From Thalia democratica (lineage: Eukaryota), in the NCBI GenBank assembly GCA_965202585.1, contig OZ241830.1, forward strand, positions 26,412,001 to 26,476,000: 64,000 bases of DNA. Reading direction: 5' to 3'. A program made the translations under genes and the position numbers. The notes under the pieces were generated by a model. That model was given only the letters and a program-made list of their open reading frames with translations. It did no database searches and was not told the DNA's origin. Below are positions 27,101 through 59,617 of the stretch, one piece after another; the first letter of the stretch is position 1; every line of letters begins with the position of its first letter.

Positions 27101-27829
27101 AAAGATTTGTGGCAAGAATGACATTACATCTCGTGCTTTTAAACATATAGCTGTTGGTTTTAAATTTATATCGATGTATATATATATACACATGTATTTA
27201 TTTGTTTTATTAAACTTAATAACTTTTTATTAACTGACAGTTATAGCCGGCTTTAGGTGTTTATGTCTCTGTATGGTTTTCTTTTTGACAGCTAAATTGC
27301 ATTTTAGTTTATAATACTTCAATCCAAACTTTTAATAATTTAAATTAGATCAAAAACATTTTAAATCAAAACTTAAGTCATCTACAAGTTTAGTTTTCAC
27401 TTCGAGTTTAAAAAAAACTTTTTAATTAACTATTGGGTTTATATTAAAGGCTTTTACGATACTTTTTTATACTTAATTTCAGGATGAAAAAAGCAGTTAT
27501 TTTATTTTATGATATTTGTGATAGTTTTTAGTGACAATAGAGTCAGGTAATTTACATAACTACTAGCTATTTCATGTAATTGAAATTTTTTATTGTGTAG
27601 CTAATTACATTAGTAAGTAATTACTGCGAGATACCACATAATCTAACAACTAATATTTTTGTGCCAAACGTCCAAAAGTCGAAAATTCAAGCCACATACG
27701 GTTTTACACTAAATTACTAAAGTCTAACTAAATAAAGACGAAAACCGGATGAAGATCTTCAAGAACAACATCGTGTGTAATTTTAAAAAATGGGTGTGGG
27801 CTCCGAACTAATATGTATTCATAAAAACT

Positions 27830-28190
27830 AACGTTCATCAACGTCTCCGATACTTTCTAGAAACTTTAGGCGCGAAACCGCCCGTAGAGCTAACCGACAA
27901 ACATCACACGCGTGCCTCGCAATACACATACCTCTCTCACATCTCTCGCGGTCTCTCTCGAAATCTTTTACCGCCTCCCTCCCTATTTTCAACGGTTCTG
28001 TCGAAACCTCTCTCCTTTCTGTTTCTCCGCTTGCTCCTCTGACGTGCGCGCACCGGATTCTTCTGTCTCTGGTAGGTGTGCCGGCTCGTACGAGGCCCCG
28101 TGTCGCGGTAGCTCCGGGCGAATTCAGCGCGGGTATATATCCGGCCGAATGCAGGACCGAAACACAAAGCGACACTTGGTTCGGTGGAAG
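27830..28190 (+). promoter_or_regulatory. GC/CpG-rich promoter of the TSR gene, with a putative short non-coding first exon
   Basis: Isolated GC-rich island with CT-repeat (GAGA-like) tracts, TGACGT (~28040) and a TATA-like tatatat (28134-28140). A donor ggaag|gtaggc lies at 28190/28191. An acceptor ccacatag| at 28679 sits 3 nt before the signal-peptide ATG. Confidence 0.55.
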
Positions 28191-28682
28191 GTAGGCGAAA
28201 TTAAACGGGCTTTAGAATTTTTTTCTGAAGGACTTTGTGAAAGTAAAAGAGGGGAGATGGGTTAAAGAAATTAATTTTCGATGGTTTAGGAGTTTAATGA
28301 AAATTTTTAGGATGCTTTATATAGCAAATTAATCACAATCAAATCATTAAACTACAGTTTTAAATTAGACGGGTGTTCAAAGTTTACAATAAAGTTCTAG
28401 AAAGTTTAAAAAATAAAGATGGGTTGAAGGGAATATAGGGTTTTAGAAATATAGCGTTTTTGAAATTATTAAAAAAAATTATCGAATCTTATGACATAAC
28501 AGATATAAAAGTAAAAGTGTAACTTTTTTCAAAGCTGTTTTTTTTATGATTTAAAGAAAAATTAAAGGTTGTTTTGTGCAAGAAATCGTTATAAACAAAT
28601 TTTTACCAGTTAAAAAATGTTTCAGGTTCTTAAGATATTTTTTATATTTAAGACCTTATTCTGTACTACCTCCACATAGAAG

Positions 28683-28737
28683 ATGAGCAGACTTTCTATA
28701 TGCCTTCTTCTGGCATACCTTGCACTACAAACGCTCG
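28683..28737 (+). CDS. TSR gene coding exon 1: signal peptide MSRLSICLLLAYLALQTL(A)
   Basis: ATG, basic residue, hydrophobic core; donor g|gttagt in phase 1, matching the next exon. Predicted cleavage is before CDEP. Confidence 0.8.
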
Positions 28738-31700
28738 GTTAGTTGATTTTTTTTTTTGTAGTTTTAAACGTATGTAAGTAAAAATAACAGTAAGTAAAGT
28801 TATAATTAGATTACTTGAATTCGATGCTATCAGTAATAACCCGATTTTTTTGTAAAATTCTGTATATATATATATATGATTTTGTGTGGTATGAATATAA
28901 AACAAAAGATATAGATAATATTTACTGTATATGGTTCTCATTAAGCTTATAAAGATAATTTTGACCGAATAAACTAAAGTTTTTTTTAAAGTAAAATAAT
29001 AGTTTTTACACATGTTTTGTAAAACATTATATTAACTTAAACTATACACTATATTGCAATTTTATTAATACTTATTCAAGCTAAACAAAGTGTATATTTC
29101 ATCGTTAAACCCAACGACCGTAATTTATTTCATATAATGTTACTGGCATGTAAGATTAAAACGTCGTAAACATCTTAATATCTGCATTTTCAAGCAAGTA
29201 GGGTTTGCAAAGTGTCCAAGTAATTGCATAAACAAAGTGTAATTTGCCGGTTTAACAAATTAAGTCGTCCCCAGTCGCCGAAACAGGAGATATATGCCTA
29301 CCAGGCAGCTATTCAGATGATTATTTTATTAAGTAAGCTTGTTAAACGGAAATATATTGAATGTAAACTTCCAAGTTTGGATAAAATGTGTATAAATTTT
29401 ACGTAAACTTGGTCATTAAGATGTTATTTTGTTGTAGTGATGAGTTTTTACGTTATTTTAATCACTTACACATCTTAAAATTTGTTTAACAAGGATGTAT
29501 AATAAAAAAGCCGTTTAAAAATGTTGAAGTTTTATAGTATTAATTCGTAACGATATTAACTTTTATTAGTGTCATAATGGTAGATAATAATGTAAAATTT
29601 GCATCAGCTTTTGTCAAATCTTATGTTTTATTACAGAAAAACTTTTAAACATATTGTTCAAAAATAGAATATTTTAGCAGCAAAATATCTTATTAAGAAT
29701 GTTTTGAACAATTTTAACCAAGTTTAAATTACTTAATTGAAAACAAATACGTTTACTAATATACGTTTTGAAATGTTTTATAACAAGAACTTATCATAAG
29801 CAAAGATAACACCTGCGTCTAACATTTAATTTAATATTTTATTTGTATAATGATTTATATCTAATTCTTGTCTGTAATGAAAAACGCAAGCAAATATGCG
29901 TAATCCGGTAGCTGTAGACGGATTAAAAACGCTCGGGGCTACATATCAATGCTGATTGTTTTGATCAACAACAAAGTGCTGTCACCAGTACCGGCCGCGA
30001 TATCGCCAATAGTTAAGCCGTGTATTGAAAGTTGCGCAATTCAATGCACTTACTCGCGTGTCAACGTAAAACTGTTCCGCCCTTTTCAACGGGTGTTCAA
30101 ATTTTCGTGGTTTTGTTTAGACATTTATTTTTTTTAATGTGCTACCAGTTGCTAATTCCATGTAATAAGGCATTTTAGTGCAAAATTATTCTAAGTTTGT
30201 AAAAACGTCTTTTACGGAATTAAAAAACTATAATCTTTTGATTGTCTCAATATAATACATAAGCATAAATTCAAAGTTTTTCGTTAAAAAGAACAAAATA
30301 GTTTTGAAAAGTACTAGGATTATCTTATATAGTATGCAGTTAATACTACTATAAACGGCAATAAAGAGTTAAACTTAACGTTTAGCTTGTTCAATAACTA
30401 GAGTGCCTTCATAAGTGCTTCAAAACAGAGAACAATTTTATTCACGGTTGTGATTTATTTATCGCAGAATTGAGTTAATGTATGTATTCAGTTTATGTTA
30501 AGCCTAATTTTACAGATTAAATGTTATAAAAATACTTGAGTCAAAAATTAATTTATCGTTCTATATTGTTGTGAAATATAAAATAATATATTTGTACGCT
30601 AACTATATGAAAAGGAGAGCAAGTATACACAATTGTTTTAACGTTGGTAGAGTTTTTCTTCTAGAAAAAACTAAAAATATTGTTCAGTTTTTAACATAGT
30701 GCGTTACTTCTGATATTAATGTTCAAAAACGCTGACAACACGACAATATTCAAACAGCTTGCGACGAGCCGTGCAGATCCACACTGCCCACATCGAGATG
30801 CTTCACCCGCGCACTGAACGGCGACATGGTTTGCGTGTGTCCCTACGATCAGCTCCTCACTAACGCCGGCACTTGCATACGTTAGTAGTTCAACTTCTGT
30901 TGTTGGTCTTTGAATATTAAATATAAAGGTAAAAGCTTAATTCATTTTTTCAAGATTTAGTTTAAAATAAATTACTTTCCTATAAATACTAAGTTGTTTT
31001 CTACTGAACAACTAAATCATTAGAATGTACTTAACACTATCATTTCCTATCAAGCATACAAAGCTTTTTATAATACTTTTTGTTTTAACCACTTGAAACA
31101 GCTCACTTAAGTCACTTTACAGCGCGATCGATCTACGTACTGTCGATGAACAGAGGATGCCCCAGGTGCCCTGCTAACTCGCAGTGCGCCACCAACTCTG
31201 GAAGGTTCTGGTGCGTCTGCGAACCCGGATTCTTCTCAAGAAACGGAGTTTGCAATCGTAAGTACATATTATATATATAAATAACAACCGAAAGCTTTTT
31301 TAAATTGTTTCATTTATGAGATAATCGAGCTCACCAAATCATCAGAAAAGCTTTTGTTTATATGTATATATACACATGTAGATACATTTATTTACTTTTA
31401 ATATCTTTTTGATATAAAAGTTTTTAAAAGTTGCTTATAAAACAAAGCGTTTTGAATATCAACGTTGATATTTTAAATTAAATTACACTTGTTTTGTCTG
31501 TTTGTGATAAGAAATTTTATCGTAATAAAGTTTTGAACTAAGTAAACAATGTAAAAAAGTAAAAAAGTAAAAATCAGTAAACGTTAAAATGTAGTTTGCA
31601 CCACCAACATATACGTTTTAATAAAAAGTTAAATTTGTGCAGCAATTGTTGCGATGCCGGTCACCTTTCCCCCCGCAACCGCCGCCCCAACAGCCGCACC

Positions 31701-34700
31701 AGCCACCCAGACCCCAGTAACTGCCGCCCCAGCAACTGCCGCCCCTGTGCCAAGAGGTTTGTTTGAATCTTTTTATCATTTCAGCTGACTTGTTACATTT
31801 ATAATATTTTGCGTTTGAGCTAGCTACTTGCTAAATAAATATAACAGTAAGTTATCTTTTTATGAAAAAAGATCTATTTTGATCCCAAGAAAGCAATCAT
31901 TTAAAATAACTAAATTGAATGGTTTCTTACTTGTTTTTCGGCATGTTTTATGAAAATAGTTTTTCTGTGCGAAAAATTATGATACCCAAACTTTAAATTT
32001 TACATTTATTTTAGTTTAAACTATTTTTTAGGGAAATAAACTGAGATGTTTTTTTATAAAAAGGGCGTGATAAACAATTTATACTAAAAAGTACATGAAG
32101 AGTAATACTTTTAAAACAAATTAGACAAATGTGTGTTGAGCATGTTTTATTTAATTGATACAACAAAAAATAAGATAAAGACAGCCATTTTTCTCAGAAA
32201 ACATGCAACCAAGAAAAACCAAAAACCATTTAAATATGCAACTAACACTTTTCAAAGCTTGTAAACGATTGCTTTTTTTAATTACTTTTACATTTAACGT
32301 CGGCTAACACACAAATGTAGCTAACAAACTTCCATTGTAATTCGAGCTGCACCCATCGAACCGCAAGTTTTGTTACGCGGCAGTAGCAGTGTTAGGCTGC
32401 TTACAATTTAATGCGCGGTCACAGTTTGAGTATTAAATTAAAAACTGGGTGTGCTGCGTACTTAGCAATACATGCACACCGCTGAGCGTTCATGTAAACC
32501 GCTGGTAAGTTCTTCAAATTTTTTCAAGTTTAATGGATACAAAGGTTCGTTTTTCATAAGCATTTAACCGTCGACTTATGAATAAACTTAATTTGTTCGG
32601 TGCTGAAATTCTTTGCAGGTTAATTTTTTCTCGAAAACCGCGCAAGTGTGTTAGCTCGCGATAAAAAACTGAAATATACTAATTTTGCGGTTGACACGGA
32701 CATTAAGCAAATTATAGAAAAATAAACAGCACCTGTTCGTATTGTGCATTGTTCGCCACTTAATAGAAAATCATTGACTAAAAATTTCTTGTTCTAAAAC
32801 TTCTGGTTAGGTAATACAATCGTTTGTTTAAGATATTTTTATAACTGCTCCATGAACATTTTTGTAGGCATTACATCACAGTTAAAATTAAGAATATAGT
32901 ATTCAGAGCTAAATGATTTGCATATTTTAAAAATTTAGTATTTTATATATATTGTTAGACAAAGGTTTTAATAAGTGTGACATATCATAATTAAATGATA
33001 GAGGGTGATATAATCAAGTTTTACAGTAATAAATAAAAGCTAACTAAGCTAATGTTAATTTTAAATTCTATGCTGTAGATAGAGTTATCACCAATCATAA
33101 CCAGTCAAGTATATTTTCTATTGTTATCTTATTCAAATTAAATCTCTAATGGTTTTCATTTAATCATGAAAAAAATGGTGAAAATTTTACTGCTTAATTG
33201 TGTCATAATACAGACAGAATAATTTTATTTGGTTATCAACTTTTTTAAATGATAACAGAATGTCCAGTCAAGTAGCAAAAATTCTGTTTAAACTTATAAT
33301 TTTGATGAGAAAAATTAGTTAGCTAAAAGCAATTTAAATTTGTTACAGAAAATTAACTTTTAGAAAGTCTTTCAAGAAATAATGCCTTAAACGGTAAACA
33401 TAACTCCATAAATTAACAAAGCAATGGTGCTTATTTGTCTTAGTTAAAGTTGTAAAGGCCTTTTTCTTCCAAATGACCTTTTTCATCAATACTTCATGTG
33501 AACTCAGAGTTTATGAAAACAAATTTAAATTTAATAGGTCCGTTTAAGTTTATCGCTTCCGTATGCACTCAATAATTTTAACTGGTAGAAAAACATCAAA
33601 GGTGTATTATTTAGAACTTTATGTACTCTTTGAAGGTATTTTAGATCGGCAGTTAGATTCTGCAGTGATTACTGTTTGAATAAGTTTGATATTAGATAAG
33701 ATCAAAGCCGTTTAACTAAATTGATTTGTACAAAACAAACCTGAGAATTTTTGGTAGCTTATATTTTTAGATTCTAAGGTAGCTTAAACAGGTTTTTACG
33801 ATTTTTAAAAATATCTATCTTATTCGATGGCAGTTGTTTTAGAAGTGGCATTTTACATTAAAACTAATGTTATTAACATTTAAACGCATAATAAACTACT
33901 TATGTTATATTTATGTAGGTAAACAGTAAAGGCTAAACACTTTTTTATAAATAACATTTTCTAGAAATAGAGAAGTTCAAACAAAAAAACTTATTTTATG
34001 AAGAGTGCACCTAATAAAATGCGATTACTTTCAAACATATAAAACAGTTTGTGATATAAGTATTTTACTGATTTATAAACTTACCTTGTATACATTTAAA
34101 TATCGTTGTAAAAAAAGTATCTACTATAGATTACATAGGAATAACTGAATAAAAGGAAAACTTTTAAAGAAAGTAGATTAGTTTATTAAATATATTTTTA
34201 AAACAAGCAACATGTACTTCTTATAACAAATATGTGCGTATTTTATAACGTATTAAGAAAAACTTATAATAGTTTTTTAAACATGTGAAATTAACAAACA
34301 CCCCTCACACAGCGCCGGTGTACAGCGAGTGGGAGATGGGACCCTGCAGCGTCACCTGCGGCATGGGGTCCAGGTACGACACCAGGCGGTGCCTCCAGGG
34401 ATACTGCAACCAGGCGCTGATCCGCGCCGTCATCTGCGACCTGCCCGCGTGCGTCGTCTACTCGCCGTGGAGGATCGGCACCTGCAGCGTGACTTGCGGC
34501 GAGGGCGTCGTCACCGACGTCAGGACCTGCCTGCAGGGATCGTGCACCGAGGACCTGGTGAGGACTTCGGCGTGCGTGAGGTATGCCTGCGAGGTGTACG
34601 GGCCGTGGGTGGCCGGCACGTGCAGCGCGGAGTGCGGCCTCGGCAAGCAGGTCGACATGAGGCAGTGCCTGTCCGGAACCTGCACGCAAGATTTGACCAG

Positions 34701-37700
34701 GACCGTGCCGTGCGAGGGAACCAACTGCGCCGTTCTCGGCGACTGGGTCATCGGAGAATGCAGCGTCACCTGCGGGGCCGGAACCAGGGTCGACAGGAGA
34801 AGGTGCTTGCAGGGCAACTGCGTGGGCGACCTGATGAGGGAGGTGGCGTGCGAGAACGACGCCTGTGTCGTCTACGGCGAGTGGGAGATCGGAACGTGCA
34901 GCGTGGCTTGCGGAACCGGCGTGAGGATCGACGTTAGACGGTGCTTGCAGGGAATGTGCACGGAAGCGCTTGTAAGGGAGGTTAGCTGCGACGGGCCCGT
35001 TTGCGTGGTCTACGGCGACTGGGTAGAAGGAGCATGCAGCGTCACTTGCGGCAATGGAGTGAGGGTCGCTACAAGAGAGTGCCTTCAGGGAGTCTGCACC
35101 GAGGCCCTGGTCAAGTCAATGGACTGCAAGATGGAAGCTTGCTCGATGGTGAGCGAGTGGGAGATTGGAACCTGTAGCGTGGAGTGCGGCAGCGGCATCA
35201 GGGTCGACACCAGGGTTTGCATCCAAGGAAACTGCATGGAAGATTTGGTTAGAACCACGCCGTGCGAGATGCCGGCCTGCATCGAGTACGGCCGTTGGGT
35301 GGAAGGTCGCTGCAGCGTGTCGTGCGGTCTCGGCATCAGGATCGACACCAGGGAGTGCCTCACCGGCATGTGCACCGGCGACATGGCCAGATCTATGACG
35401 TGCGAGCTTGCCGCCTGCCCCGTCTACAGCGAGTGGGTGATCGGAACTTGCTGCTCGGCTTGCGGCGGCGGCACCAGGGTCGACACCAGAGAGTGCCTTT
35501 CGGGCGACTGCAGGGAGCCGCTGGTGAGGAAGGTGGACTGCAACCAGCAGGCGTGCGAGAAGTACAGCGACTGGGTCGTCGGGCCCTGCAGCGCCACTTG
35601 CGGCATGGGTACCCAGGTGGAGAGCAGGACCTGCGAAGCTGGAGACTGCACCGAGGAGCTTTTCAGAACAAGAGTTTGCACTGCTGACGTTGAAGTTTGC
35701 GTTGCGTACGGCGAATGGAAGTTGGGAATGTGCAGCGCCGCATGCGGACCCGGTCAGAGAATCGACTTTAGGGACTGCCTCTCCGGAAGCTGCGACAACA
35801 CCATGCTCTCCAGAACCGTACCCTGTACCGGAGCGATCGAAGTTTGCGTGGTATACAGCAAGTGGGAGATTGGAACTTGCAGCGCGTCGTGCGGAGTAGG
35901 CGAGAGAATCGACAGGAGGGTGTGCCTGTCCGGTGTTTGCACCGAGGACCTGATCAGAGTACAGAGGTGCGACAGCGGCGTCGAGTGCGTTGTTTACGGC
36001 CCGTGGGTGCTCGGAAGCTGCAGCTCGTCGTGCGGCAACGCCGGAATGAGGGTCGACACCAGGGAGTGCTTGTCCGGAATCTGCACAGGGGACTTGACCA
36101 GGGTGGAGCAGTGCGCGCAGGGAGTCTGCGTCGAGTACGGCGACTGGCAGTTGGGAGTGTGCAGCGTCTCGTGCGGCAACGGAGTTCAGATCGACAGGAG
36201 GCAGTGCAAGATCAACTGCTACGGCAAGTCGGCCGGCACCGCCGAGTGCTCGCAAGCCGCATGCACCGAGTCCCTCGAAAGAAGCTCGGTCTGCTCCATG
36301 GGCGACTGCGGTCCCATCTATGCTGATTGGGTCATGGGACGTTGCAGCGTCACTTGCGGCACAGGCGTCAGAACCGACACCAGGTCGTGCGTCAGAGGCA
36401 TGTGCACCCCAGAGTCGAGAACAGTCACTTGCGTCGAGATGCCGTGCCCGCCCTGCGCCCCCGTCGAACCCGTCTACGGTCCTTGGGTTATCGGAATGTG
36501 CAGCGCAGAGTACGGAACCGGCGTGCAGTTCGACACCAGAGAGTGCTTGGAAGGCGACTGCGACGAGGCATTGCTCGTGAGGGAGGTGCCCTGCGAAGGT
36601 AAAGTTTGTCCTTCGTACGGCCCATGGGTGATCGGCGTCTGCAGCGTGAGTTGCGGCTCAGGAGTTGTCGTCGAAACCAGAGAGTGCATTAGAGGCGACT
36701 GCGTGCTGCCATTGCGAAGATCGAGCCCTTGCGAGCAGCCAGCCTGCCCCCAACTCGGTCCGTGGAAGGCCGGAAAGTGCAGCGTAACATGCGGAACCGG
36801 TGTGATGGTCTACAACAGGGATTGCATGAACGGCGTGTGCGACGGACCACTAATAAAATCCGAACCTTGCAATACTGGAGTCGAGTGCGTCGTCTACGGT
36901 CCGTGGGTGAAGGGCCAGTGCAGCTGCACTTGCGGAGGCGGAGTCAGGACCGACACGAGAGAGTGCTTGTCTGGATTTTGCACCGAGCCACTCACTCAAG
37001 AAATTCCCTGCGAGTCCAAGCCCTGCATGGAAGTCGGACCCTGGACCATCGGTATTTGCAGCGCGGCTTGCGGATCCGGAACCAGAACTGACACAAGAAT
37101 GTGCATCACTGGACCGTGCGACGTACCTCTGACGAGAGAATCGCCTTGCCAGGCCGAGCCTTGCCCCATGTACAGCGATTGGGTCATTGGAATGTGCAGC
37201 TCCAGCTGCGGCGGCGGATACAGAGTCGACACCAGGACTTGTCTGCAAGGCAGATGCACTGATGCTCTTGAGCGAAGGCAGGTCTGCGAAATGGCACCGT
37301 GCGTGAAGTACAGCGACTGGGAGGTTGGAGTTTGCAGCGCCACCTGCGGTTCGGGCGTTAGAGTCGACAGGAGAGTGTGCTTGTCCGGCTACTGCACCGA
37401 GCCTCTGATGCGAACTGAGGCGTGCACATCGGTGCCTTGCCCCGTAGTGAGCGACTGGGTCGTTGGAAGGTGCAGTGTCACTTGCGGCGAGGGAGTCAGG
37501 GTCGACATGAGATCTTGCATTCAGGGAGCTTGCACTGGAGCCATGGAAAGATCAACGCCCTGCTACGAAGTTGCTTGCGTCGTGTACGGCCCATGGGTTG
37601 AAGGACCTTGCATAAAGAGCTGCAGCGGCAGCACAAGAGTCGACACGAGAGAGTGCTTGTCAGGCGCTTGCACCGAGCCCCTTCAGAAAACCGTTCCTTG

Positions 37701-40700
37701 CGAGCAACAGATGACCTGCGTCAACTACAGCAAGTGGAAGATCGGCACCTGTAGTGCCTCTTGCGGATCAGGCGTGAGAGTCGACACCAGAGAGTGCCTT
37801 TCTGGTTTCTGCACCGAATCTCTTAGGAGAGAAGAACCTTGCGCGGCCGAACCTTGCACTGTTTACGGCGAGTGGGAGATCGGTTCGTGCGGCGTCACAT
37901 GCGGCGAAGGCATCAGAGTCGATTTCAGATCCTGCCTGCAAGGAAAGTGCACAGAGAACTTGATGAGAACCGTATCTTGCACGACTCCCCCATGCGTCGT
38001 CTACAGCGCGTGGATGATCGGAGCTTGCAGCGTAACCTGCGGCGAAGGTCAGAGAGTCGACACCAGGATGTGCTTGGCCGGCGCTTGCACCGATTCTTTG
38101 GAAAGAATTACCCCTTGCGGCGGACGCGAGTGCACAGTTTACGGCGAGTGGGTAATCGGCATGTGCAGTGCCACCTGCGGAGACGGTTTTAGGATGGACA
38201 CAAGGGCCTGCCTTGCGGGTGTGTGCACGGAACCTCTCGAGAGAACTTCATCGTGCAACAGGAGAGACTGTGTGAAGTACAGCGACTGGGTGATCGGCAT
38301 GTGTAGTGTCACCTGCGGCTCCGGTTTGAGATACGATTCGAGAGAGTGTTTGTCAGGATTCTGCACTGAGGACTTGTCAAGAGCAGTGCCTTGTGACCAA
38401 CCAGCTTGTGTAGTGTACAGCCAATGGACACTAGGAGAGTGTAGTGCTTCATGCGGAACAGGAATGAGACTTGATACAAGAAGATGTCTTTCTGGTTTCT
38501 GTACAGAAGATCTTACTAGGTCAGCTCCTTGTGATTCTGGTGTAGAATGTGTAGTTTACGGTCAATGGATGATAGGAACATGTAGTGCAACTTGTGGGGC
38601 AGGAATAAGAGTCGACAGAAGAATGTGCTTAGCTGGTGTTTGTACTGAAGCTCTGGAAAGACAAAGCCCTTGTGAAGCTCCTGCTTGTGTAGTGTACAGC
38701 GATTGGACAATGGGAAAATGTAGCGCTTCATGCGGAACAGGAGTAAGATTCGATACTAGAAGATGTGTTTCCGGTGTCTGTACTGAAGATCTCTTTAGAA
38801 CATCTCCTTGTGATTCTGGGGTAGTATGTACAGTCTACGGCGAATGGATGATTGGAACGTGTAGTTCCACTTGTGGTGCAGGAATAAGAGTCGACAGAAG
38901 AATGTGCTTGGCTGGTGTATGTACTGAAGCTCTTGAAAGATCAATTTCTTGCGATAGTCCCGCATGTGTAGTGTACAGCGAATGGGAAATAGGAGTATGT
39001 TCTGCTTCCTGTGGAACAGGTTTTAGACGGGATAGTAGAAAATGTCTTTCCGGTGTCTGCACTGAAGATCTCTTTAGAACATCTCCTTGTGATTCCGGGG
39101 TAGTATGTACAGTCTACGGCGATTGGATGATTGGAACATGTAGTGTCAGTTGCGGTGCAGGAGTGAGAGTCGACAGAAGAATGTGCTTGGCTGGTGTCTG
39201 TACTGAAGCTCTTGAAAGATCAATTCCTTGCGACGGTCCCGAATGTGTAGTGTACAGCCAATGGGAAATAGGAGTATGTTCTGCTTCCTGTGGAACAGGT
39301 TTTAGACGGGATAGTAGAAAATGTCTTTCCGGTGTCTGCACTGAAGATCTCTTTAGAACATCTCCTTGTGATTCCGGGGTAGTATGTACAGTCTACGGCG
39401 AATGGATGATTGGAACATGTAGTGTTAGTTGCGGTGCAGGAGTTCAAGTCGACAGAAGAATGTGCCTGGCTGGTGTCTGTACTGAAGCTCTTGAAAGAAC
39501 AAGCCCTTGTCAACGACCCGCTTGCATTGTCTACAGTGAATGGGTTGTCGGAACATGTAGCGCTACTTGCGGAACTGGAGTAATAGTTGAAAGAAGAAGG
39601 TGTCTTTCTGGTACGTGCACTGAAGACCTCATGAGAACTAGTCCTTGTGACTCAGGTGTAGAATGTGTAGTCTACGGACAATGGATGATTGGAACATGTA
39701 GTGTCAGTTGCGGTGCAGGAGTACAAGTTGACAGAAGAATGTGCCTGGCTGGTGTCTGTACTGAAGCTCTTGAAAGAACAAGCCCTTGTGAACGACCCGC
39801 TTGCATCGTCTACAGTGAATGGGTTGTCGGAACATGTAGCGCTACTTGCGGAACTGGAGTAGTAGTTGAAAGAAGAAGGTGTCTTTCTGGTAGGTGTACT
39901 GAAGACCTCATGAGAACTAATCCTTGTGACTCAGGTGTAGAATGTGTAGTCTACGGCCAATGGATGATTGGATCATGTAGTGCTACTTGCGGTGCAGGAG
40001 TACAAGTTGACAGAAGAATGTGCTTGGCTGGTGTTTGCACTGAAGCTCTTGAAAGACAAAGCCCTTGTGAACGACCTGCTTGTGTTGTCTACGGTCAATG
40101 GGTTATTGGATCTTGCAGCGCTACTTGCGGAACTGGAGTAAGAGTTGATACAAGACAATGTCTTGCTGGTACGTGCACTGAAGACCTTATTAGATCTTCT
40201 CCTTGTGAAGGACCAGTCTGTGTTGTCTACAGCGATTGGACCATTGGAGCATGCAGTGCTACTTGCGGTTCCGGAGTCCGAACCGACACAAGAACATGTG
40301 TTCAAGGTTTCTGCACCGACGACCTCATCAGAATGAGCTCTTGCGAGGCAGAGCTCTGCCCGGTCTACTCCGACTGGATGATCGGATCTTGCAGCGTCAC
40401 TTGTGGCGAAGGAACAAGAATGGACAGAAGACTCTGCTTGCAGGGAACTTGCACCGAAGACCTTATGAGATCAGTACCTTGCGTCAACGACGAGTGCGTA
40501 GTGTACAGCAGATGGACTATCGGATCATGCAGCGCTACTTGCGGTCAAGGGCTGCGCATGGACACTAGAACGTGCGTACAAGGAAGGTGTACCGAAGCCT
40601 TGCAAAGGTCGGTTCCATGCAACAGCGGAAGGGTTTGCGTCGTCTACGGCGAGTGGATGATCGGAACCTGCGACGCTTCGTGCGGCTCGGGAACCAGGGT

Positions 40701-43381
40701 CGACACCAGAGTGTGCCTTGCCGGTGTCTGCACCGAAGCTCTCGAAAGGGCTGTACCTTGCGAAAGCGGAGTTGTCTGCACCGTCTACAGCGATTGGATG
40801 ATCGGATCTTGCAGCGCTACTTGCGGCGCCGGACAAAGGGTCGACCGCAGGCAGTGCGTTGCGGGAACTTGCACCGAACCGTTGGTCAGAACTAGAGACT
40901 GCGACAGCGGCGTCACCTGCATCGTCTACGGAGAGTGGATGATTGGTGCTTGCAGCGCAACTTGTGGAACCGGAATGAGGGTCGACAGGAGGCAGTGCTT
41001 GCAAGGTTTCTGCACTGAAGACCTCGTGAGAACTAGCCCGTGCAACAGCGGTGTCGAGTGCGTCGAGTACGGAAACTGGGTGATGGGATCTTGCAGCGCG
41101 ACCTGCGGAACCGGTGTCAGGGTCGACAGCAGACAGTGCCTGTCAGGAGTGTGCACCGAAGACCTCATGAGATCGTCTCCTTGCGACAGCGGCGTGCAAT
41201 GTGTCGTCTACGGCCCGTGGGTCGTCGGTTCGTGCAGCGCCACTTGCGGATCGGGAGTCAGGGTCGACACCAGAAGGTGCATGCAAGGAAACTGCATGGA
41301 GAGCCTCCAGAGGTCGATTCCTTGCGACAGCGGCGTCACCTGCGTTGTGTACGGCGAGTGGGTAATTGGAGAATGCAGCGCGTCGTGCGGAACTGGAATG
41401 AGGGTCGACCAGAGGGCTTGCCTCGCCGGCATGTGCACCGAAGACCTCACTAGATCACTGCCTTGCAACAGCGGTGTCGAGTGCGTCAGGTACGGAGACT
41501 GGGTCATCGGAACTTGCAGCGCCACCTGCGGCGCCGGAGTCAGAGTCGACCAGAGGGCTTGCTTGGCCGGCATTTGCACCGAAGACTTGGCCAGGTCCAC
41601 CCCTTGCCAGGCGACCGAGTACTGCACCACCTACAGCGAGTGGCTCCTCGGAACTTGCAGCGCCTCGTGCGGAAGCGGCACCAGGACCGACAGGAGGGTG
41701 TGCGTCTCCGGAACGTGCACCGAGTCCCTGGTAAGAACCCAACCGTGCGACAGCGGGAGGGCTTGCCAGGTGCAGGTCGTCATGAGCGAGTGGGTAGCGG
41801 GAACTTGCAGCGCAACGTGCGGCGAGGGCATGCGCGTTGACCAGAGGATGTGCATGCAGGGAGCTTGCACCGAGCCGATGACGAGGACGGTGCCATGCCA
41901 GGTGAGGGAGTGCATGAGAGCTGCCGTGTACGGGGAGTGGACCATGGAAAGCTGCAGTGTGAGCTGCGGAGTCGGTGAGAGGATACAGAGGAGGGCGTGC
42001 CTGGAGGGAATGTGCATGCAGGAGCTCGTCAGGAAGGTGCCATGCGACACCGGCGTCGCTTGCAGAACAGAAGGTTAGCGTTAAGCAAAAATAAACGACT
42101 TGATCTTATATTAATTAATATTTATAAACTATTTGTAAGCAAGTAAAGTTCGTGTCTTTGTTGAAAATTTTTCGAGATGTGTTAGGTTTGTTTTAAAGTA
42201 AAACTCAAGGAAAATATTTTGTAAAAACATATATACTAGCTTTAAATCAGGATGTAATACTTTCTTACTGTACTCAAGCTTTTAAAACTTCAAAAGTTTG
42301 ACGAAAACTTAGGTAGGTTAAAATTATCAAACAACTTTATTGTTAACGTTTTTTATAAAAACTCACCAAATTTTGGTGAGACGCAAAAAATTAGGTATAC
42401 AAAGTTTTTGAATACATTTATAAACATTTATAGCAATAAGAAAACATCATAGTCAAATAAAAAAAAAATTGAAACACAATTTTTTTTTTTTTCACAGTCA
42501 CCTGCCAGATTCCTGACTTGCGCTCGCTGAACATGGTCAGCCCCGAGAACAGGGTTTTCACCCAAGGGGATTCCCTTGTGCTCAACTGCGGCTTCGGCTA
42601 CGAGATGTCCGGCTTCAACGTCATCACCTGCCAGGGCAACGGCATGTTCACAGAAGTCAAGGCCACCTGCGTACAAAGTTAGCTTTTTTGTGTACTAGAG
42701 TTTTTGACTTAGGGCGGTTTCTAAAACAGGATTTCTAAAAATCGTTTTCATAATTGCCCACTTGGCAGAAACTGGAAAATAATCACGCGTTTTTAACACA
42801 TATTGCCTTTTTACTTTGTTTACCCATTTAATTTACTGCCCCTTATTAGTTGTAATAGTTGTTAGTCCCGATAGAGAATATCGCCCACGTTTAGAAACCC
42901 TGCTTTTAAAATATTTCTTATAAATAAAAGATATACGTTTTTAGATGTATTCAACAAAAAATTGTAAATATAACTTACATAATATCTTCAAACTCAAGGC
43001 CTTAAGCCGTCTTGGAAATTATTCAATTGACAAAAGTACGTAGATCAATAAAAAGTTTTTTGACAGAGTAGCATGTTAGTTTGTATAATAATATTATAAA
43101 ATATAAAAATATAAAAATCAATTTCAGTTAGAATAAAATATACAAGTCAATAATTACTTATATCTTAGAAAAATACCAACTAGTAATAAAAAGCTTATAA
43201 AATTAATGACAAAGTTTAATTTGTATTGCAAATTCTTAAGCTAAAAAACTGTAACACAAGTACGTAACTATAAAAATATTTTTATTACGATTGAAAAATA
43301 ACAAGCGTTAAGCTAAACAAAACCATTGTTGCAGGTTACGGCGGGTTGAGAAGCTACCTAGGAAGATGGAGAGAGGCTTAG
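28683..43381 (+). CDS. Giant secreted TSR-repeat protein, 2804 aa. join(28683-28737,30758-30880,31123-31257,31643-31756,34313-42073,42498-42677,43335-43381)
   Basis: All six introns are GT-AG and phase 1. The joined length of 8415 nt gives one open frame from MSRLSICLLLAYLALQTLA to ...YLGRWREA*. Domains: signal peptide, 2 EGF-like, PTA linker, 55 TSR-like, 1 CCP. Confidence 0.85.
30758..30880 (+). CDS. TSR gene coding exon 2: EGF-like module CDEPCRSTLPTSRCFTRALNGDMVCVCPYDQLLTNAGTCI
   Basis: GC-rich 123-bp exon, caaacag|...|gttagt, phase 1-1, six Cys with a C-x-C. Confidence 0.85.
31123..31257 (+). CDS. TSR gene coding exon 3: EGF-like module ..GCPRCPANSQCATNSGRFWCVCEPGFFSRNGVCN
   Basis: 135-bp exon, ctttacag|...|gtaagt, phase 1-1, EGF signature CxCxPGF...GxC. 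Confidence 0.9.
31643..31756 (+). CDS. TSR gene coding exon 4: Pro/Thr/Ala-rich mucin-like linker
   Basis: 114-bp exon, tttgtgcag|...|gtttgt, phase 1-1. Reads IVAMPVTFPPATAAPTAAPATQTPVTAAPATAAPVPR. Confidence 0.85.
34313..42073 (+). CDS. TSR gene coding exon 5: 55 tandem ~46-aa thrombospondin type-1-like repeats
   Basis: Uninterrupted 7761-bp frame. Unit consensus VYxxWxxGxCSxTCGxGxRxDxRxCxxGxCTExLxRxxPCxxxxC. Acceptor cctcacacag| at 34312; donor gaag|gttagc at 42073. Confidence 0.95.
38410..40083 (+). repeat. Intragenic higher-order repeat: 6 x 279 bp (a 47+46-aa TSR dimer, repeats 30-41)
   Basis: Near-identical strings recur at exactly 279 bp: aatgggaaataggagtatgt at 38981 and 39260; tgggttgtcggaacatgtag at 39541 and 39820. 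Confidence 0.9.
42498..42677 (+). CDS. TSR gene coding exon 6: sushi/CCP domain
   Basis: 180-bp phase 1-1 exon after a poly-T acceptor. TCQIP...G...LNCGFGYEMSGFNVITCQGNGMF.....TC has four Cys in the CCP pattern. Confidence 0.9.
42727..42902. mobile_element. hAT-like MITE (176 bp) in the last intron
   Basis: Terminal inverted repeats caggatttctaaa / tttagaaaccctg match at 12 of 13 positions. The 8-bp flanks ttctaaaa / cttttaaa could be a decayed target-site duplication. Confidence 0.5.
43335..43381 (+). CDS. TSR gene terminal coding exon (S)YGGLRSYLGRWREA*
   Basis: Acceptor ttgttgcag|, phase 1, locally GC-rich, TAG stop, AATAAA 130 bp downstream. Confidence 0.7.
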
Positions 43382-43510
43382 TGTGCGTTAGCATGGTGAA
43401 ATTGAAATAGTGCAAATTTTTTTTTTAATTTCTGTTTTCTAGCAACTTAAACTGCGAAAATTTATTACTTGTGTTTGCTTTTCATTAATTTTTAACGTGT
43501 TTGAATTTTG

Positions 43511-43516
43511 AATAAA
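43511..43516 (+). terminator. Putative polyadenylation signal of the TSR gene
   Basis: First AATAAA after the stop codon. Weak evidence in AT-rich DNA. Confidence 0.4.
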
Positions 43517-46500
43517 CTGTAACTAAAACAACTGGTCGAGTATTATTTATACATTAGAAATTGGAAATTTATATTAGCAATTTAGAAGTAGACCTGTTTA
43601 GTGAAATAATATGTACATACTTTTTCTCGTTAAACATTTTGAGGAATAATTAAAAATTAAATTTGACGAAAGCAAAAAGTATTAAGTAAGTTTTTATATT
43701 AAAGGTTAAAAACAAAAGAATTTTAAAGAAATTTTTTTTTTTATAAAAAAAAAAGACATCATCAGGCAAAAACAAGTTTTACTAATTAACTTTTAGTCCT
43801 TGAAACTTTTTATGACAATTTTGTTACTCAAAAAAACATGATATTCAAAAAGTGAAAGTAGGTTTTAAATTAATCTACGGTAGAAATATTTTAGCTAATT
43901 TATATTAAGCTATCACCCATTTCTAATAGTAAGTATTGAAAGCAAGTTTTTAATTACCTTAAAAGTCCAAACTAAATTTCATAATGTGCTGCTTTATACT
44001 TAAATATGCAATTGTGATTTATGCACGGTGTGTATTAGTTATGGCCTAATATAAAAGCAGCTAAGTTATGAAAAACTGTAGTTTAAAACCTCTTTACTCT
44101 CTATCATGATTGCTATAATTTTAAATTTTAATATATTATTTTGTATGGCAGTACTTTAGTGCAAAATTTAAGTCTTTGAATTAAAAACTTTAATAAAGTT
44201 AACTACATATATAATAAAACATGTTTTAAAGTATTATAATATTATTTTTTTTAACTTTAGTTTTAATACCCATTTTTGAACTTACATATTAACTACAATA
44301 GTAACTTGTAGAACAATTTTAACCTTCAATGGCACACTCTGTTTAAGTACTTAGGCTGGTAATTACAGAAACTGCTTTATTGCGCGTTAGAAATATACTT
44401 TAATAGACCAGTTTTAATTAAATGGAAGTTAGTATTCAAAAAGTTTTGCAAGTAAAAATGTTCATTAATTCTTTTTATGTTTTTTAATTTAACTTTCTGT
44501 AAAATAACATTCTTTTTAAACATAACAGTCACCCTTTTCAAACTATTCTTTTTACATCTAAACTTGTTGACTTTAAGTTTTACTCGATTTTAATTTCTTA
44601 TGTCAGTTTGAAATCTCAATATCCTTTAAAAGTCTTTGAAAAGTCTAAGAAACTTTTTAATAAAAAAACAAAACAAATAAATCTAACACCTATGAATATA
44701 ATTTAAATCTTTTTTTAACCGCACATTAATGTAAGCGTGCGAAGCAATATTTAATAACTTTTACATATTGTTAATCTGACTTTGAAAGACTTACCAAACA
44801 GGATTTATGATTTTAAGTAATGTTGATATTTATCTTTGCAATATAAATGCGATTACCGATATCAAAGTTAAATCAACATGTTAAAAGTTGTTTAAGTTTT
44901 CTGATAAATGGCTTAAATTTGTTTTAATTAAATTCTAAGGTTTACAGTACTCAACTTTATAAAACTAATTAAACTTTTACAAATAAAGTTTGATGCTTAA
45001 CTTTTAAATAGATAGTAGAAAAATGTAGTCTTAAAAAAAAGTATTTAGTTTGATTGTTTTAAGTTTAAATATTACTACTCTTTTGAAACAAAATTATTTA
45101 CAAAAAGATATTTAAACTCTTTTATTTCTTTTTATTTATCGTTTTCTTTTAGATTTATAATTACATAATAGTAACCTTTTGGTTGCTGATTGTTATAAGA
45201 GCTATTTTTAAAGAGTTTTTCTTTTATGAATCAGTTATAAGTTTTATCAAAACAGAACTTTCTGAAAATTTTCTACACTTTAAAACGTATTCAACACAGT
45301 TAAAAGGTTTAATCAAAATCTATTTAAAACATAATTTAATGTATAATTTTTTAATGAAATTTATACAAAGGGTTCACTAAAAACTATAGTTTTTATTCTA
45401 AGATATTAATAAAACATTTAATGTCGATCTGTATATATAGACAAATATTAAAATACAATTTTTATGAGTTTTTAAAAGATTGCTTAATACATAAGTATAT
45501 ATAGAGTTGGTGTGACAGAAGGTATTTATACTTTTAATTTAAAAAAGTAATATTGTCAATGTTAAGGTTTTTTTTAAATAAACAAGTTCATAAAAACCAC
45601 TAAAAGAAATATTAAATTTAGTCATTGTAGTCGATTTAGTGGTTTAAATGTCTCATAAAAACCGGAAATACCTCATATAACTTAACTTAAATAGAATAAA
45701 TAGTTTATTGTGATTTGTAATTGTTGATTTATGTCTACGATAATCTTTTTATGGTAATGTTGGTTATAGGGCTTTATTAAATCCATTTTTGAAGTAAACA
45801 CTCTAGGTACAATGTTGTTTTTATTGATTAAAAAAAAGTCAGTAATAAAAAGAACAGTTAGTATTTATTATTTTTGGCGAAGCCATGGCTGAGCCTTAAC
45901 TTAGTGAAACTATATTTTTCTAAACAGATCTTACTTAACTGTGTTATTAATTTAGTACCACTAAATAAAAAGTAGGACATGTTGCACAATATGAGTTATT
46001 TTATAATATGATGTTGAGTGTATTAATTTTTTTTTAAAGCTTTTAGTTTTTGCTATGTAGAATAAAGTTGAATATTTACAAAATTTCTTGAAACAAGCTT
46101 TCATTTATTTTTTAAAATGTGTTAATTAGTCTCAAACGGCAACTAAATACAAAAGTTAAATTCTAATTCTAATTATTATGATCTGCTTTATATAATAAGT
46201 GATAAGTAAATGTGTATATTTACAAGAGTAGTACTTTACGGTCTTAGACTATGACTTAAATAAACATAAAAACTTGAGGGAAATGCTAGACTTGGTAAGT
46301 TCAAAAATTTTATACATTTTTTATAGCAGGTTGAGAAAATTAAAAACGAAGAGTGGCAAGTAAATTGTTATATAAAGTAAAAAAACACTTTTGGTACTAT
46401 GATTTCTTGAAAATTAATGATTAAAGCACTGGTTATGCTGTAATAACTATAGTTTTTTTACGAGTCAATTTATTAAAAATTTTCACTAATTTTAAAGCTC

Positions 46501-48173: not shown

Positions 48174-48611
48174 CTAAGTTTGAAAACTAGTAAAAGACAA
48201 ATTCAATAATACACTAATGTAAAATAAAGAGTTTAAACTAATTTTGTTTATTACTTTGATTGAACTTAAGCTATTTTCAAAGTTGCACAAATCTGTGTCG
48301 CAACAAGTGATTGTGAATTTCACGTTACTCAATCCTTGATAGCCATGTTCGTAGGTTCCTGGTTTCGTACAGTACATGGAATCCCTGCAACCTTTTGATG
48401 TACAAAAATCTTGATCCCCGCACGTGAAGTATGGAACTGCACCGTTTACAATTGTAGCAGTTGCACAGAAGTCCGAGAATTCCGGTTCGCATTCTTCAAT
48501 GGTTACATTTGATGGAGAAATATCTACATCTCTAAACTCATAGCACTTTAAACCGACACAATTAACAAACAAGTAGCTCGAACAAAATATGACAGTTAGT
48601 GAAAATCTCAT
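48174..48611 (-). CDS. Ly6/uPAR three-finger protein 1, 145 aa, signal peptide and probable GPI anchor
   Basis: Intronless ORF: hydrophobic leader, LKCYE start, 10 Cys, CCDTDLCN end, hydrophobic C-terminal tail. Confidence 0.92.
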   Translation of the reverse strand: MRFSLTVIFCSSYLFVNCVGLKCYEFRDVDISPSNVTIEECEPEFSDFCATATIVNGAVPYFTCGDQDFCTSKGCRDSMYCTKPGTYEHGYQGLSNVKFTITCCDTDLCNFENSLSSIKVINKISLNSLFYISVLLNLSFTSFQT

Positions 48612-54549: not shown

Positions 54550-54972
54550 TTACAAATAAGTTAAATAGAAATAAACTAAAACACACATGTATAACAAAGA
54601 ACTGAAACCAATCCTGTTCAAAGTTTTTGCTGAACTTTCGACGTTGCACAAATCTGTATCACAACAAGTGATTGTGAATTTCACGTTTTGATATCCAAGA
54701 TAACTATGTTCGTAGGTTCCTGGTTTTGTACAAAACATGGAATCAATACAACCTTTTGATGTACAGAACTCCTCATCTCCACACGTTTGATATGGAACTT
54801 CGCCGTTTCTGATAGTAGAAGTAGCGCAGAAATACGAGGAATCCGATATACATTCTTCTATCGTTAAGTTTAATGGATATAAATCTATGTTGCTGGCTTC
54901 ATAGCACTTCAAACCGGCACAACTTACAAGTAAGCAGCTTGAACAAAATGTGAGAACTACTAAGAATTTCAT
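54550..54972 (-). CDS. Ly6/uPAR three-finger protein 2, 140 aa, signal peptide and probable GPI anchor
   Basis: Intronless paralog with the same Cys spacing as gene 1, CCDTDLCN, and hydrophobic tail FSSLLYMCVLVYFYLTYL. Confidence 0.93.
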   Translation of the reverse strand: MKFLVVLTFCSSCLLVSCAGLKCYEASNIDLYPLNLTIEECISDSSYFCATSTIRNGEVPYQTCGDEEFCTSKGCIDSMFCTKPGTYEHSYLGYQNVKFTITCCDTDLCNVESSAKTLNRIGFSSLLYMCVLVYFYLTYL

Positions 54973-59188: not shown

Positions 59189-59617
59189 TTAAAATATAAC
59201 AAAATACGAACAAAGAAAAAGACTCATGTAAAAAAAACAGCTGAAACGAATTTTGTTAAGAGTTATTGCTGAACTTGGAATATTTTCATCGTTGCACAAA
59301 TCCGTGTCGCAGCAAGTCATCGTGAACTTCACGTTGTCCTTTCTGAGGTAGTCGCGTTCGTAGGTGCCCGGTTCCCTGCAGTAGTCGGTGTTGTAGCAGC
59401 GTTTCGTCCTGCAAAACTCCTGGTCCCCGCACGTGTACTTTGGCACTTCGCCGTTCCTGAATGTGGCAGTTACACAAAAGTCCATGTAAGGGTAGCTGCA
59501 TTCTTCGATGGTTTCATTCGATTCGAACCCTATGTTTCTGCCTTCGTAGCATCTTAAACCGGCACAACTGACAAATAAGCAGCTCGAGCAAAATGTGAGA
59601 ATTACTAAGAAGTTCAT
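59189..59617 (-). CDS. Ly6/uPAR three-finger protein 3, 142 aa, signal peptide and probable GPI anchor
   Basis: Intronless paralog: LRCYE start, 10 Cys, CCDTDLCN, hydrophobic tail, GC-rich codons in the domain. Confidence 0.93.
   Translation of the reverse strand: MNFLVILTFCSSCLFVSCAGLRCYEGRNIGFESNETIEECSYPYMDFCVTATFRNGEVPKYTCGDQEFCRTKRCYNTDYCREPGTYERDYLRKDNVKFTMTCCDTDLCNDENIPSSAITLNKIRFSCFFYMSLFLCSYFVIF

Follow-up and report, generated by a model that had tools for sequence, protein, structure and literature searches.

Giant arrays of TSR modules are common in marine invertebrate genomes, where they are usually named automatically as "SCO-spondin-like" or "hemicentin", and protein searches found them widespread among marine invertebrates. 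To our knowledge almost none of these giant arrays has a known role. The TSR fold itself is common to vertebrate SCO-spondin, thrombospondins, ADAMTS/papilin, hemicentin and properdin, which have fewer TSRs, each together with defining non-TSR domains that are missing from the protein considered here. Hemicentin, for example, consists of an N-terminal VWA domain, a long Ig array, six TSRs, G2F, EGF modules and a fibulin-type C-terminus. A preliminary description of the present locus held that the familiar TSR-rich proteins combine fewer TSRs with other domains; as a general premise this is not supported by comparison with invertebrate proteins. HyTSR1 of Hydra, expressed in granular mucous gland cells, has 48 TSRs and no further domain (PMC4820225), and the H2Y3E3 protein of Ciona, a protein of Lingula and "SCO-spondin-like" proteins of bivalves carry about 40-50 TSR cores. 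A euglenid transcript has about 90.

Here we describe a gene of Thalia democratica that encodes 55 tandem TSRs between EGF-like and sushi modules. The window analysed is a stretch of 64,000 nucleotides, and all coordinates are positions within it.

Gene structure and transcription

The gene was rebuilt independently of the preliminary description and consists of seven exons on the + strand (28683-43381). The 8415-nt coding sequence translates to 2804 residues with a single terminal stop, so that the phase-consistent 2804-aa model lacking a transmembrane segment proposed earlier is confirmed. All introns run GT..AG and a sequence check gave phase 1-1 for each internal exon. The 5' UTR (28624..28682) reaches to the start of the transcript contig, the first piece of which covers 28624-28736. 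This contig, from RNA dataset X6, begins 2 nt upstream of an acceptor-like tttcag|G, and hence an additional upstream exon or a spliced leader at the 5' end is possible. Exon 1 (28683..28737) contains the ATG and the signal peptide MSRLSICLLLAYLALQTL(A) and ends in phase 1 with the donor GTTAGT; its joint to exon 2, 28736/7 to 30757/8, is present in the X6 contig. The two EGF-like modules are encoded by exon 2 (30758..30880), which was defined by X6 joints and its cysteine pattern, and by exon 3 (31123..31257), the joints of which are found in both X6 and X9. Exon 4 (31643..31756), also delimited by RNA joints, encodes a mucin-like Pro/Thr/Ala linker of 38 aa, and exon 5 (34313..42073; 7761 nt, donor GTTAGC) encodes the entire TSR array. 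The single sushi/CCP domain lies in exon 6 (42498..42677), which was identified by Pfam and follows a polypyrimidine tract of 16 Ts with a CAG. Exon 7 (43335..43381), placed by phase and splice signals, encodes the tail (S)YGGLRSYLGRWREA and the TAG stop. Retention of intron 6 would give a protein ending ...CVQS* at 42682. An AATAAA at 43511..43516 is, judged by its sequence, the likely polyadenylation signal.

RNA from the same organism (X6) contained a 4805-nt spliced contig of depth 260 that joins exons 1-2-3-4-5 with zero mismatches and exactly at the predicted splice sites, and that collapses inside the repeats. The earlier proposal that all of these exons are joined thus stands on RNA for exons 1 to 5, whereas we infer the exon 5-6 and 6-7 joints from splice signals, phase, the GC3-rich frame of the sushi exon and the share of sequence words found in X6. 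That share, 0.08 of the words sampled from 42100-46000, agrees weakly with the expectation for exon 6, exon 7 and a 3' UTR. In the JGI metagenome contigs scanned neither the exact exon 5-6 junction pattern nor the sushi peptide was present. The exon 3-4 joint was also found in marine metatranscriptome contigs that are 90-95% alike and have depths of about 290-600, depth being a poor measure of abundance. The exon 4 linker varies among related marine transcripts, with a 22-letter replacement in X9/X10 and PVTAAP-type loose ends in X5 transcripts. The locus is an intact, transcribed seven-exon gene.

Three GC-rich islands (27801-28250, 29901-30100 and 32301-32450) were considered as extra exons and rejected, as they had neither an in-phase open frame nor exon-level X6 coverage; when they were examined as RNA genes no tRNA was detected, and Rfam gave no match even with the threshold relaxed to E 0.1. 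Two non-coding islands aside, the gene span contained no other coding-like GC islands. Antisense ORFs of up to 379 aa within exon 5 were discounted as arising secondarily from the periodic, GC-rich sequence of the coding strand.

The predicted protein and its end modules

The protein is composed, in order, of a signal peptide, two EGF-like modules, the Pro/Thr/Ala linker, 55 TSRs, a sushi domain and a 15-aa tail. The mature form would have 2785 residues, a mass of 297 kDa, a pI of about 5 and 350 cysteines. The signal peptide, MSRLSICLLLAYLALQTLA, is the sole hydrophobic stretch, no membrane segment was found and the C-terminal tail is short, basic and hydrophilic. These features support a predicted secreted protein that lacks a membrane anchor.

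Both EGF-like modules have the six-Cys CxC pattern and are encoded by phase 1-1 exons. The first (C-x3-C-x8-C-x10-C-x-C-x13-C) gave no significant Pfam match (TIL, E 0.13) and is EGF-like by cysteine spacing only. The second matched EGF_MSP1_1 (E 5.5e-5, 23.5 bits, below the cut-off of 27) as well as EGF_3, EGF_CA and others (E 5e-5 to 0.02), all under the gathering score. No Pfam family matched the exon 4 linker. The sushi domain (PF00084) scored 31.9 bits, above the cut-off of 20.7, over the full-length profile (1-56) and has four Cys; in our reading of the sequence its usual conserved Trp is apparently replaced by Phe. Taken with the TSR data below, the domain, fold and hydrophobicity results support the earlier view of a very long secreted, disulfide-rich TSR array with distinct small end modules.

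A reduced TSR unit

The 55 units make up 2587 of the 2785 mature residues, a count that depends on assembly of the repetitive exon. Most are 46-47 aa long, with a few irregular units of up to 61 aa. Exactly six Cys are found in 50 of the 55; the exceptions are units 9, 15 and 19 with seven, unit 14 with eight, in which a loop of 15 aa is inserted, and unit 16 with five. When 49 three-unit windows were aligned W, R and G were invariant and the six Cys positions were conserved, one of these, in one unit position, being nearly invariant. The unit has a single Trp, not the WxxWxxW ladder, and its C3-C4 hairpin is four residues long.

Membership in the TSR superfamily is nevertheless clear. Pfam TSP_1 (PF00090) matched 27 stretches of exon 5 at E 8.3e-150 and 487 bits (cut-off 21.6) and no other family matched this exon. 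A sequence-profile search of the PDB matched TSP-1, properdin, F-spondin and TRAP. An AlphaFold (AF2) model of three units (pLDDT 93.7) has the canonical three-strand TSR fold and is elongated. Foldseek matched it to properdin and to TSR2-3 of TSP-1 with probability 1.0, and it superimposed on BAI1 TSR3 with an rmsd of 1.7 A and a TM score of 0.75. The POFUT2 consensus C-x-x-S/T-C-x-x-G is kept in 46 of the 55 units, and hence the array would probably be O-fucosylated during folding in the ER. None of the 55 units has a WxxW/C-mannosylation motif, which marks a reduced TSR variant and leaves superfamily membership unaffected. The array has one N-glycosylation sequon.

Probable growth of the array

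Units 30-41 form a young block (38413..40086) within exon 5 in which a super-repeat of two units (279 nt) occurs six times, and unit 42 is related to them. Alternate units of the block are 82-99% identical in DNA, with GC3 of 0.19-0.37. The array would have grown through unequal crossing-over inside exon 5, the 279-nt two-unit block being a still-young product of that growth. Comparison of the copies gave dN/dS values of 0.16-0.55, which point to purifying selection on the young copies.

Comparison with known TSR proteins

Homologues were sought in word-indexed searches of 5.8 billion clusters, each made with a different third of the array, and in an exhaustive phmmer search of 1.84 billion representatives. 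Among the matches listed for two array regions in the cluster search none had the EGF-EGF...TSR55...sushi layout, and the phmmer search gave no long relative above 40% identity. The matches listed share TSRs alone, their identity in long alignments reaching at most 40%, and none combines EGF, TSR and sushi modules.

The top match in every search was H2Y3E3 of the tunicate Ciona intestinalis (P0001; E 7e-189, 1.4e-187 by phmmer and 4.6e-161), a 2642-aa fragment without an N-terminus. About 49 TSR cores were counted in it, and Pfam recognised no further domain. It is 30-38% identical to the Thalia array but is built of canonical WxxW units (48 WxxW motifs), with cores about 52 aa apart. The entry is uncharacterised and was named "Hemicentin-1" automatically. 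HyTSR1 (Q2MCN4 / AM182484; P0007, 3023 aa; E 9e-97 and 2e-96) is likewise giant and almost all TSR. However, this cnidarian protein is only 27-28% identical, with the likeness confined to the TSR fold, its core motifs are about 57 aa apart versus 46-47 here, and EGF and sushi caps are absent from it.

Other tunicate proteins also have runs of short TSRs. "SCO-spondin-like" proteins of Clavelina, Styela, Ciona and Phallusia (P0004, P0005, P0010, P0011, P0030, P0031 and P0077) have short TSRs of about 47-48 aa with a short C3-C4 loop (CxNGPGC), and some have sushi or EGF-type modules. They differ in combining 14-24 TSRs with a serine-protease (trypsin) domain, joined in P0005 by VWA, and their units scored at most 36 bits with the Thalia unit profile, versus 56-77 bits for the best environmental fragments of the same type. 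Units of the Thalia type were found only in short marine fragments (P0167, P0170, P0143 and others), for which look-ups gave no context; P0167 has the source "merc" and accession ERR1719376.

We also looked for the domains that define the familiar TSR families. SCO-spondin was rejected because Pfam found no EMI, VWD, TIL, LDLa or CTCK domain in exon 5 and the caps, and hemicentin because no exon matched VWA, Ig or G2F. The exons likewise lack the TSPN, vWC, type 3 repeats and TSPC of thrombospondins and the reprolysin protease, disintegrin, spacer, Kunitz and PLAC domains of ADAMTS/papilin. We therefore class the protein neither with the signalling thrombospondins nor with the ADAMTS-type enzymes. 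With its signal peptide and 55 tandem TSRs that form nearly all of the chain it belongs with HyTSR1 to the giant all-TSR secreted proteins, taken as those with 40 or more such units, which are a design class rather than a proven orthology group.

The architecture had been called unfamiliar. This holds in part, for the 46-47-aa unit and for the caps, which no annotated match in either library shares, but not for the array, since arrays of 45-50 or more TSRs were already known. Given the arrays of Hydra, Ciona, Lingula and bivalves, neither array size nor rod design is new, and lineage specificity is confined to the short unit and to these particular caps.

Possible roles of the protein

Because TSRs arranged head-to-tail would form elongated, disulfide-stiffened segments, we expect the product to be a thin rod or filament, a few hundred nanometres long, whose binding modules differ between the two ends. 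It would be one member of a family of giant TSR-array proteins that has expanded in this lineage. The preliminary description put forward a fibre, adhesive, mucus net or extracellular coat as candidate roles. By analogy we tentatively favour, at somewhat short of an even chance, the view that the protein is a bulk component, structural or serving as a spacer, of a secreted extracellular material, for instance feeding mucus or some other matrix. The contig depths given above would fit an abundant RNA, and HyTSR1 is a product of granular mucous gland cells in Hydra (PMC4820225). In Oikopleura the endostyle cells show strong expression of lectins, of a vWF-like gene and of a "sco-spondin", a pattern taken by the authors as mucus secretion (bioRxiv 10.64898/2026.03.31.715263). 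That "sco-spondin" and the Styela "hemicentin" have automatic names and may not be TSR-array proteins of the Thalia type. Two observations count against a structural role. The usual modules of gel and fibre polymerisation (VWD, CTCK, ZP and C8/TIL) are absent, and whereas classical TSRs have a basic glycosaminoglycan-binding face, the Thalia protein is net acidic.

The main alternative, though rather unlikely, is a soluble pattern-recognition or agglutinating immune factor, in which the array would bind microbes or particles, much as properdin does, and the sushi domain would act as a complement-type interaction module. Sushi is a complement control module, and the TSRs of properdin are, with those of TSP-1, the best structural matches, although the resemblance to properdin amounts to no more than the TSR fold that both have. 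In the nearest named ascidian matches (P0005 and P0004) short TSR arrays are combined with sushi, VWA and trypsin domains, a layout that resembles complement factor B or MASP. A TSR-MACPF protein of the Ciona gut membrane, Ci-MACPF1, has 10 TSRs (PMC6109156), and a microbe-binding role has been proposed for the cnidarian rhamnospondins (PMC4820225). However, effector domains such as a lectin, MACPF or protease domain are absent from the Thalia protein, its 55 near-uniform units resemble a spacer or rod more than a diversified recognition surface, and selection on the young copies is purifying, not diversifying.

The evidence for a secreted rod applies equally to an extracellular coat other than feeding mucus, such as the tunic, an adhesive or an investment of eggs or sperm. 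TSR-bearing astacins are reported on ascidian sperm (PMC6353882), and the Oikopleura house protein oik23 has two TSR and two CCP domains (PMC3390340). Neither the sperm astacins nor oik23 has a long array, however, and no specific pointer leads to gametes or tunic; we regard such a coat as improbable.

SCO-spondin is a giant secreted TSR-rich fibre protein and many relatives of the Thalia protein are auto-annotated "SCO-spondin-like", which would suggest a neural-tube protein, either Reissner-fibre material or an axon-guidance cue. This is very improbable, as the domain content disfavours it (EMI, VWD, TIL, LDLa and CTCK are missing) and the best identities are 25-40% and involve TSRs only. 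Finally, an artefact (misjoined exons of separate genes, a pseudogene or a mis-assembled repeat) might be suspected from the inferred 3' joints and the collapse of the X6 contig in repeats, but is most improbable given a 7761-nt open frame in a genome of 22-25% GC, RNA that joins exons 1-5 without mismatches, agreement of all exon phases and purifying selection on the copies.

Significance of the locus

The discovery is modest in that the modules are all known, comparable arrays have been published and the function is a guess. The protein represents a lineage-specific version of a protein kind that is already known, if little studied, and what is particular to it is the 46-47-aa one-Trp unit together with the EGF and sushi caps. 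A bolder extension of the structural reading, which we consider quite unlikely, is that this and further TSR-array proteins are the main fibre-formers of the secreted mesh (mucus net or similar) of a pelagic filter-feeder. If so, one of the ocean's major particle filters would be made of O-fucosylated minimal-TSR rods instead of mucins, and the abundance of these transcripts in open-ocean metatranscriptomes would make sense. The locus provides an RNA-supported example of a giant TSR array that would still be growing, with its gene structure complete and its minimal TSR of 46 aa modelled at high confidence. It is suited to structural study of TSR rods and to tests of whether such proteins build the mucus or matrix of tunicates.

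A seven-exon gene with one giant exon

The GC content of the window in 2-kb bins is 20-33% throughout, but rises to 48-59% at 34-42 kb. This GC-rich stretch is a single open frame (34273-42078, + strand) with small GC-rich islands both upstream and downstream. By reading the islands together with splice signals we built a seven-exon model on the + strand: exon 1 (28683-28737) provides the ATG and signal peptide, exon 2 (30758-30880) and exon 3 (31123-31257) encode EGF-like modules 1 and 2, exon 4 (31643-31756) a Pro/Thr/Ala linker, exon 5 (34313-42073) 55 TSR units, exon 6 (42498-42677) a sushi domain, and exon 7 (43335-43381) a 15-aa tail followed by the stop. All introns are GT..AG and all internal exons are phase 1-1. 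The spliced coding sequence of 8415 nt encodes 2804 aa with one stop, which is terminal. This independent reconstruction gave exons, coding sequence and protein identical to those of the phase-consistent 2804-aa model in the preliminary description.

Transcript evidence

X6, a sequencing run from Thalia democratica, contained every word sampled from the giant exon versus only 8% of those from the adjoining 3.9 kb, and hence was taken to be an RNA data set. A single X6 contig (4805 nt, depth ~260) aligned over 28600-34500 with zero mismatches and was spliced at the predicted sites (28736/7 to 30757/8, 30880 to 31123, 31257 to 31643 and 31754/6 to 34311/3; GT..AG at four of four). Over this RNA-tested part, exons 1-5, the exon joining proposed in the preliminary description holds and the gene model is base-accurate. 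The exon 3-4 joint was also present in marine metatranscriptome contigs 90-95% alike (from sets X9, X10 and X5), and thus the gene is also expressed by close relatives in open-sea samples.

We infer the exon 5-6 and 6-7 joints from a strong exon 6 acceptor (16 T, then CAG), phase, the high GC3 of the sushi frame, and the share of 0.08 of flanking words in X6, which is about that expected from exon 6, exon 7 and the 3' UTR. JGI contigs scanned for the exon junction and for the sushi peptide gave zero matches. Retention of intron 5 or 6 would soon bring translation to a stop, at the TAG at 42076 or 42680, a few residues on; therefore, only the sushi cap or the 14-15-aa tail hinges on the 3' joints.

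The X6 contig begins at 28624, with three unaligned letters ahead and a consensus acceptor (tttcag followed by G) 2 nt further downstream (28620-28626). This start could reflect a further 5' exon or trans-splicing of a spliced leader. A 450-bp island of 50-60% GC (27801-28250), open on both strands and without match in Rfam and tRNA searches, lies some 400 bp ahead of the transcript start; it may represent a promoter, a repeat or a non-coding exon further upstream. Within intron 4 a weak GC island (32225-32603), which has no reading frame in phase with the gene, is covered by two 151-nt X6 pieces (depth 3) and a single X9 piece; these could derive from precursor RNA before splicing or from a small element distinct from the gene.

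The array consists of reduced TSRs

TSP_1 was the only Pfam family found on the giant exon (E 8.3e-150). Delimiting units by a motif anchor along the exon gave 55, nearly all of 46-47 aa and 50 of them with exactly six cysteines, the majority consensus being VYGxWxIGxCSATCGxGxRVDxRxCLxGxCTExLxRxxPCxxxxCV. When 49 three-unit windows were aligned, the W, R, G and all six Cys columns were invariant, except that one Cys and one Gly were nearly so at one unit position each. AlphaFold on this alignment gave a pLDDT of 93.7. Foldseek with the predicted structure returned the TSRs of properdin and thrombospondin-1 (probability 1.0), a PDB sequence-profile search agreed on TSR identity, and the single-domain fit to BAI1 TSR3 was 1.7 A. 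Pfam, AlphaFold on three repeats and Foldseek all bear out the TSR identity first called from sequence alone. The unit is a reduced TSR with one Trp (WxxW in 0 of 55) and a C3-C4 spacing of only four residues. The POFUT2 acceptor CxxS/TCxxG is retained in 46 of the 55.

Five irregular units (9, 14, 15, 16 and 19; model residues 513-1048) are grouped within the N-terminal third of the array. A seventh Cys is present in three of them, the second Cys is missing from another (CSAEYG), and the fifth carries an insert of 15 aa with two additional Cys. These odd cysteines could form inter-domain or inter-chain disulfides.

Units 30-41 are six copies of a 279-nt two-unit super-repeat, within which alternate units share 82-99% DNA identity; older units have 52-75% identity to their best-matching unit. 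Values of dN/dS among the super-repeat copies were 0.16-0.55, indicating that the units are constrained at the protein level. As the array fills a single symmetric exon and includes a block that is still young, it was presumably expanded by unequal crossing-over inside the exon.

GC3 along the giant exon (34315-42072) is 0.91 at the 5' end, declines to ~0.65, falls sharply to 0.23-0.32 over the super-repeat block and then rises to 0.83 at the 3' end. The steps, at ~38365 and ~40165, coincide within one exon with repeat age: codons of the young block are AT-rich and genome-typical, and GC3 is high in the older units, which have diverged. The exon also contains long ORFs on the antisense strand and in other frames (up to 379 aa, such as 35116-36255 on the - strand), rich in Ala, Gly, Arg and Ser. 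They lack independent support as genes and most likely arise from the periodicity and high GC content of the coding strand.

End modules and the mature protein

The sushi domain scored above the Pfam threshold (31.9 vs 20.7 bits), EGF-like module 2 was sub-threshold, and module 1 is EGF-like by cysteine spacing only. The 3' end of the linker (31714-31756, at the exon 4/5 joint) has 22 different letters in X9 and X10 marine transcripts, and in an X5 transcript the linker continues into more PVTAAP-like repeats; thus linker sequence, and probably length, differs among close relatives. The mature protein has 2785 aa, 297 kDa, a pI of ~5 and 350 Cys. The signal peptide is the sole hydrophobic segment of the 2804-aa model, in accord with the earlier reading of a secreted protein, and given the hydrophilic tail there is no sign of a membrane segment or a GPI signal. 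Overall, the gene product is secreted, acidic and rich in cysteine, with 55 TSR folds in a chain between small end modules.

Neighboring genes

Three tandem single-exon genes on the - strand (48174-48611, 54550-54972 and 59189-59617) encode proteins of 140-145 aa, each with a signal peptide, a ten-Cys three-finger pattern of Ly6/uPAR type ending in CCDTDLCN, and a hydrophobic C-terminus of GPI-signal type. Pfam UPAR_LY6 scored 24.2 bits (cut-off 24.8) for 48174-48611 and was weaker for the other two.

Relatives and possible role

Three large protein searches found similarity at the TSR level only, with an excess of tunicate proteins among the best matches. Each time the top match was Ciona H2Y3E3 (2642 aa), which has a comparable array of ~49 TSR cores but only 30-38% identity. 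Lower matches were a Lingula protein, Oikopleura TSR+VWA proteins, Clavelina and Styela TSR+sushi/trypsin proteins, HyTSR1 of Hydra, and many bivalve and cnidarian 'SCO-spondin-like' proteins. The best scores of the unit profile were 56-77 bits, in six unnamed marine fragments, all short, followed by 42-52 bits in three more proteins; one of the fragments (P0167) is catalogued under run ERR1719376. All other proteins examined gave <=40 bits, and the nearest tunicate relative, the Clavelina protein P0005, <=36 bits. HyTSR1, which granular mucous gland cells express, has 48 TSRs without other domains (PMC4820225), whereas the present protein adds EGF and sushi caps to its 55.

The analogy with HyTSR1 leads us to favor, tentatively, a role in secreted mucus or matrix, as a structural component or spacer. 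The array would be O-fucosylated in the ER and the protein would form an extended rod, a few hundred nanometres long. A further lead toward mucus is strong 'sco-spondin' expression in Oikopleura endostyle cells, interpreted as mucus secretion (bioRxiv 10.64898/2026.03.31.715263). Counting against this reading, the protein lacks known polymerisation domains. The main competitor, a soluble factor for recognition or agglutination resembling properdin or the rhamnospondins, seems appreciably less likely, and a component of another coat is more doubtful again. Domain content speaks against a SCO-spondin or Reissner-fibre role, which is thus very improbable, and that the gene is an artefact is scarcely credible.

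The preliminary description had considered the architecture unfamiliar, on the premise that known proteins have fewer TSRs. That premise fails because proteins of 45-50 TSRs, such as HyTSR1, are already published; neither rod design nor TSR count is new. The combination of EGF, TSR and sushi domains does stand apart, being absent among the matches listed. Given its short single-Trp unit, its EGF and sushi caps and the finding of no annotated orthologue, the gene is a lineage-specific variant within the known class of giant TSR-array proteins.
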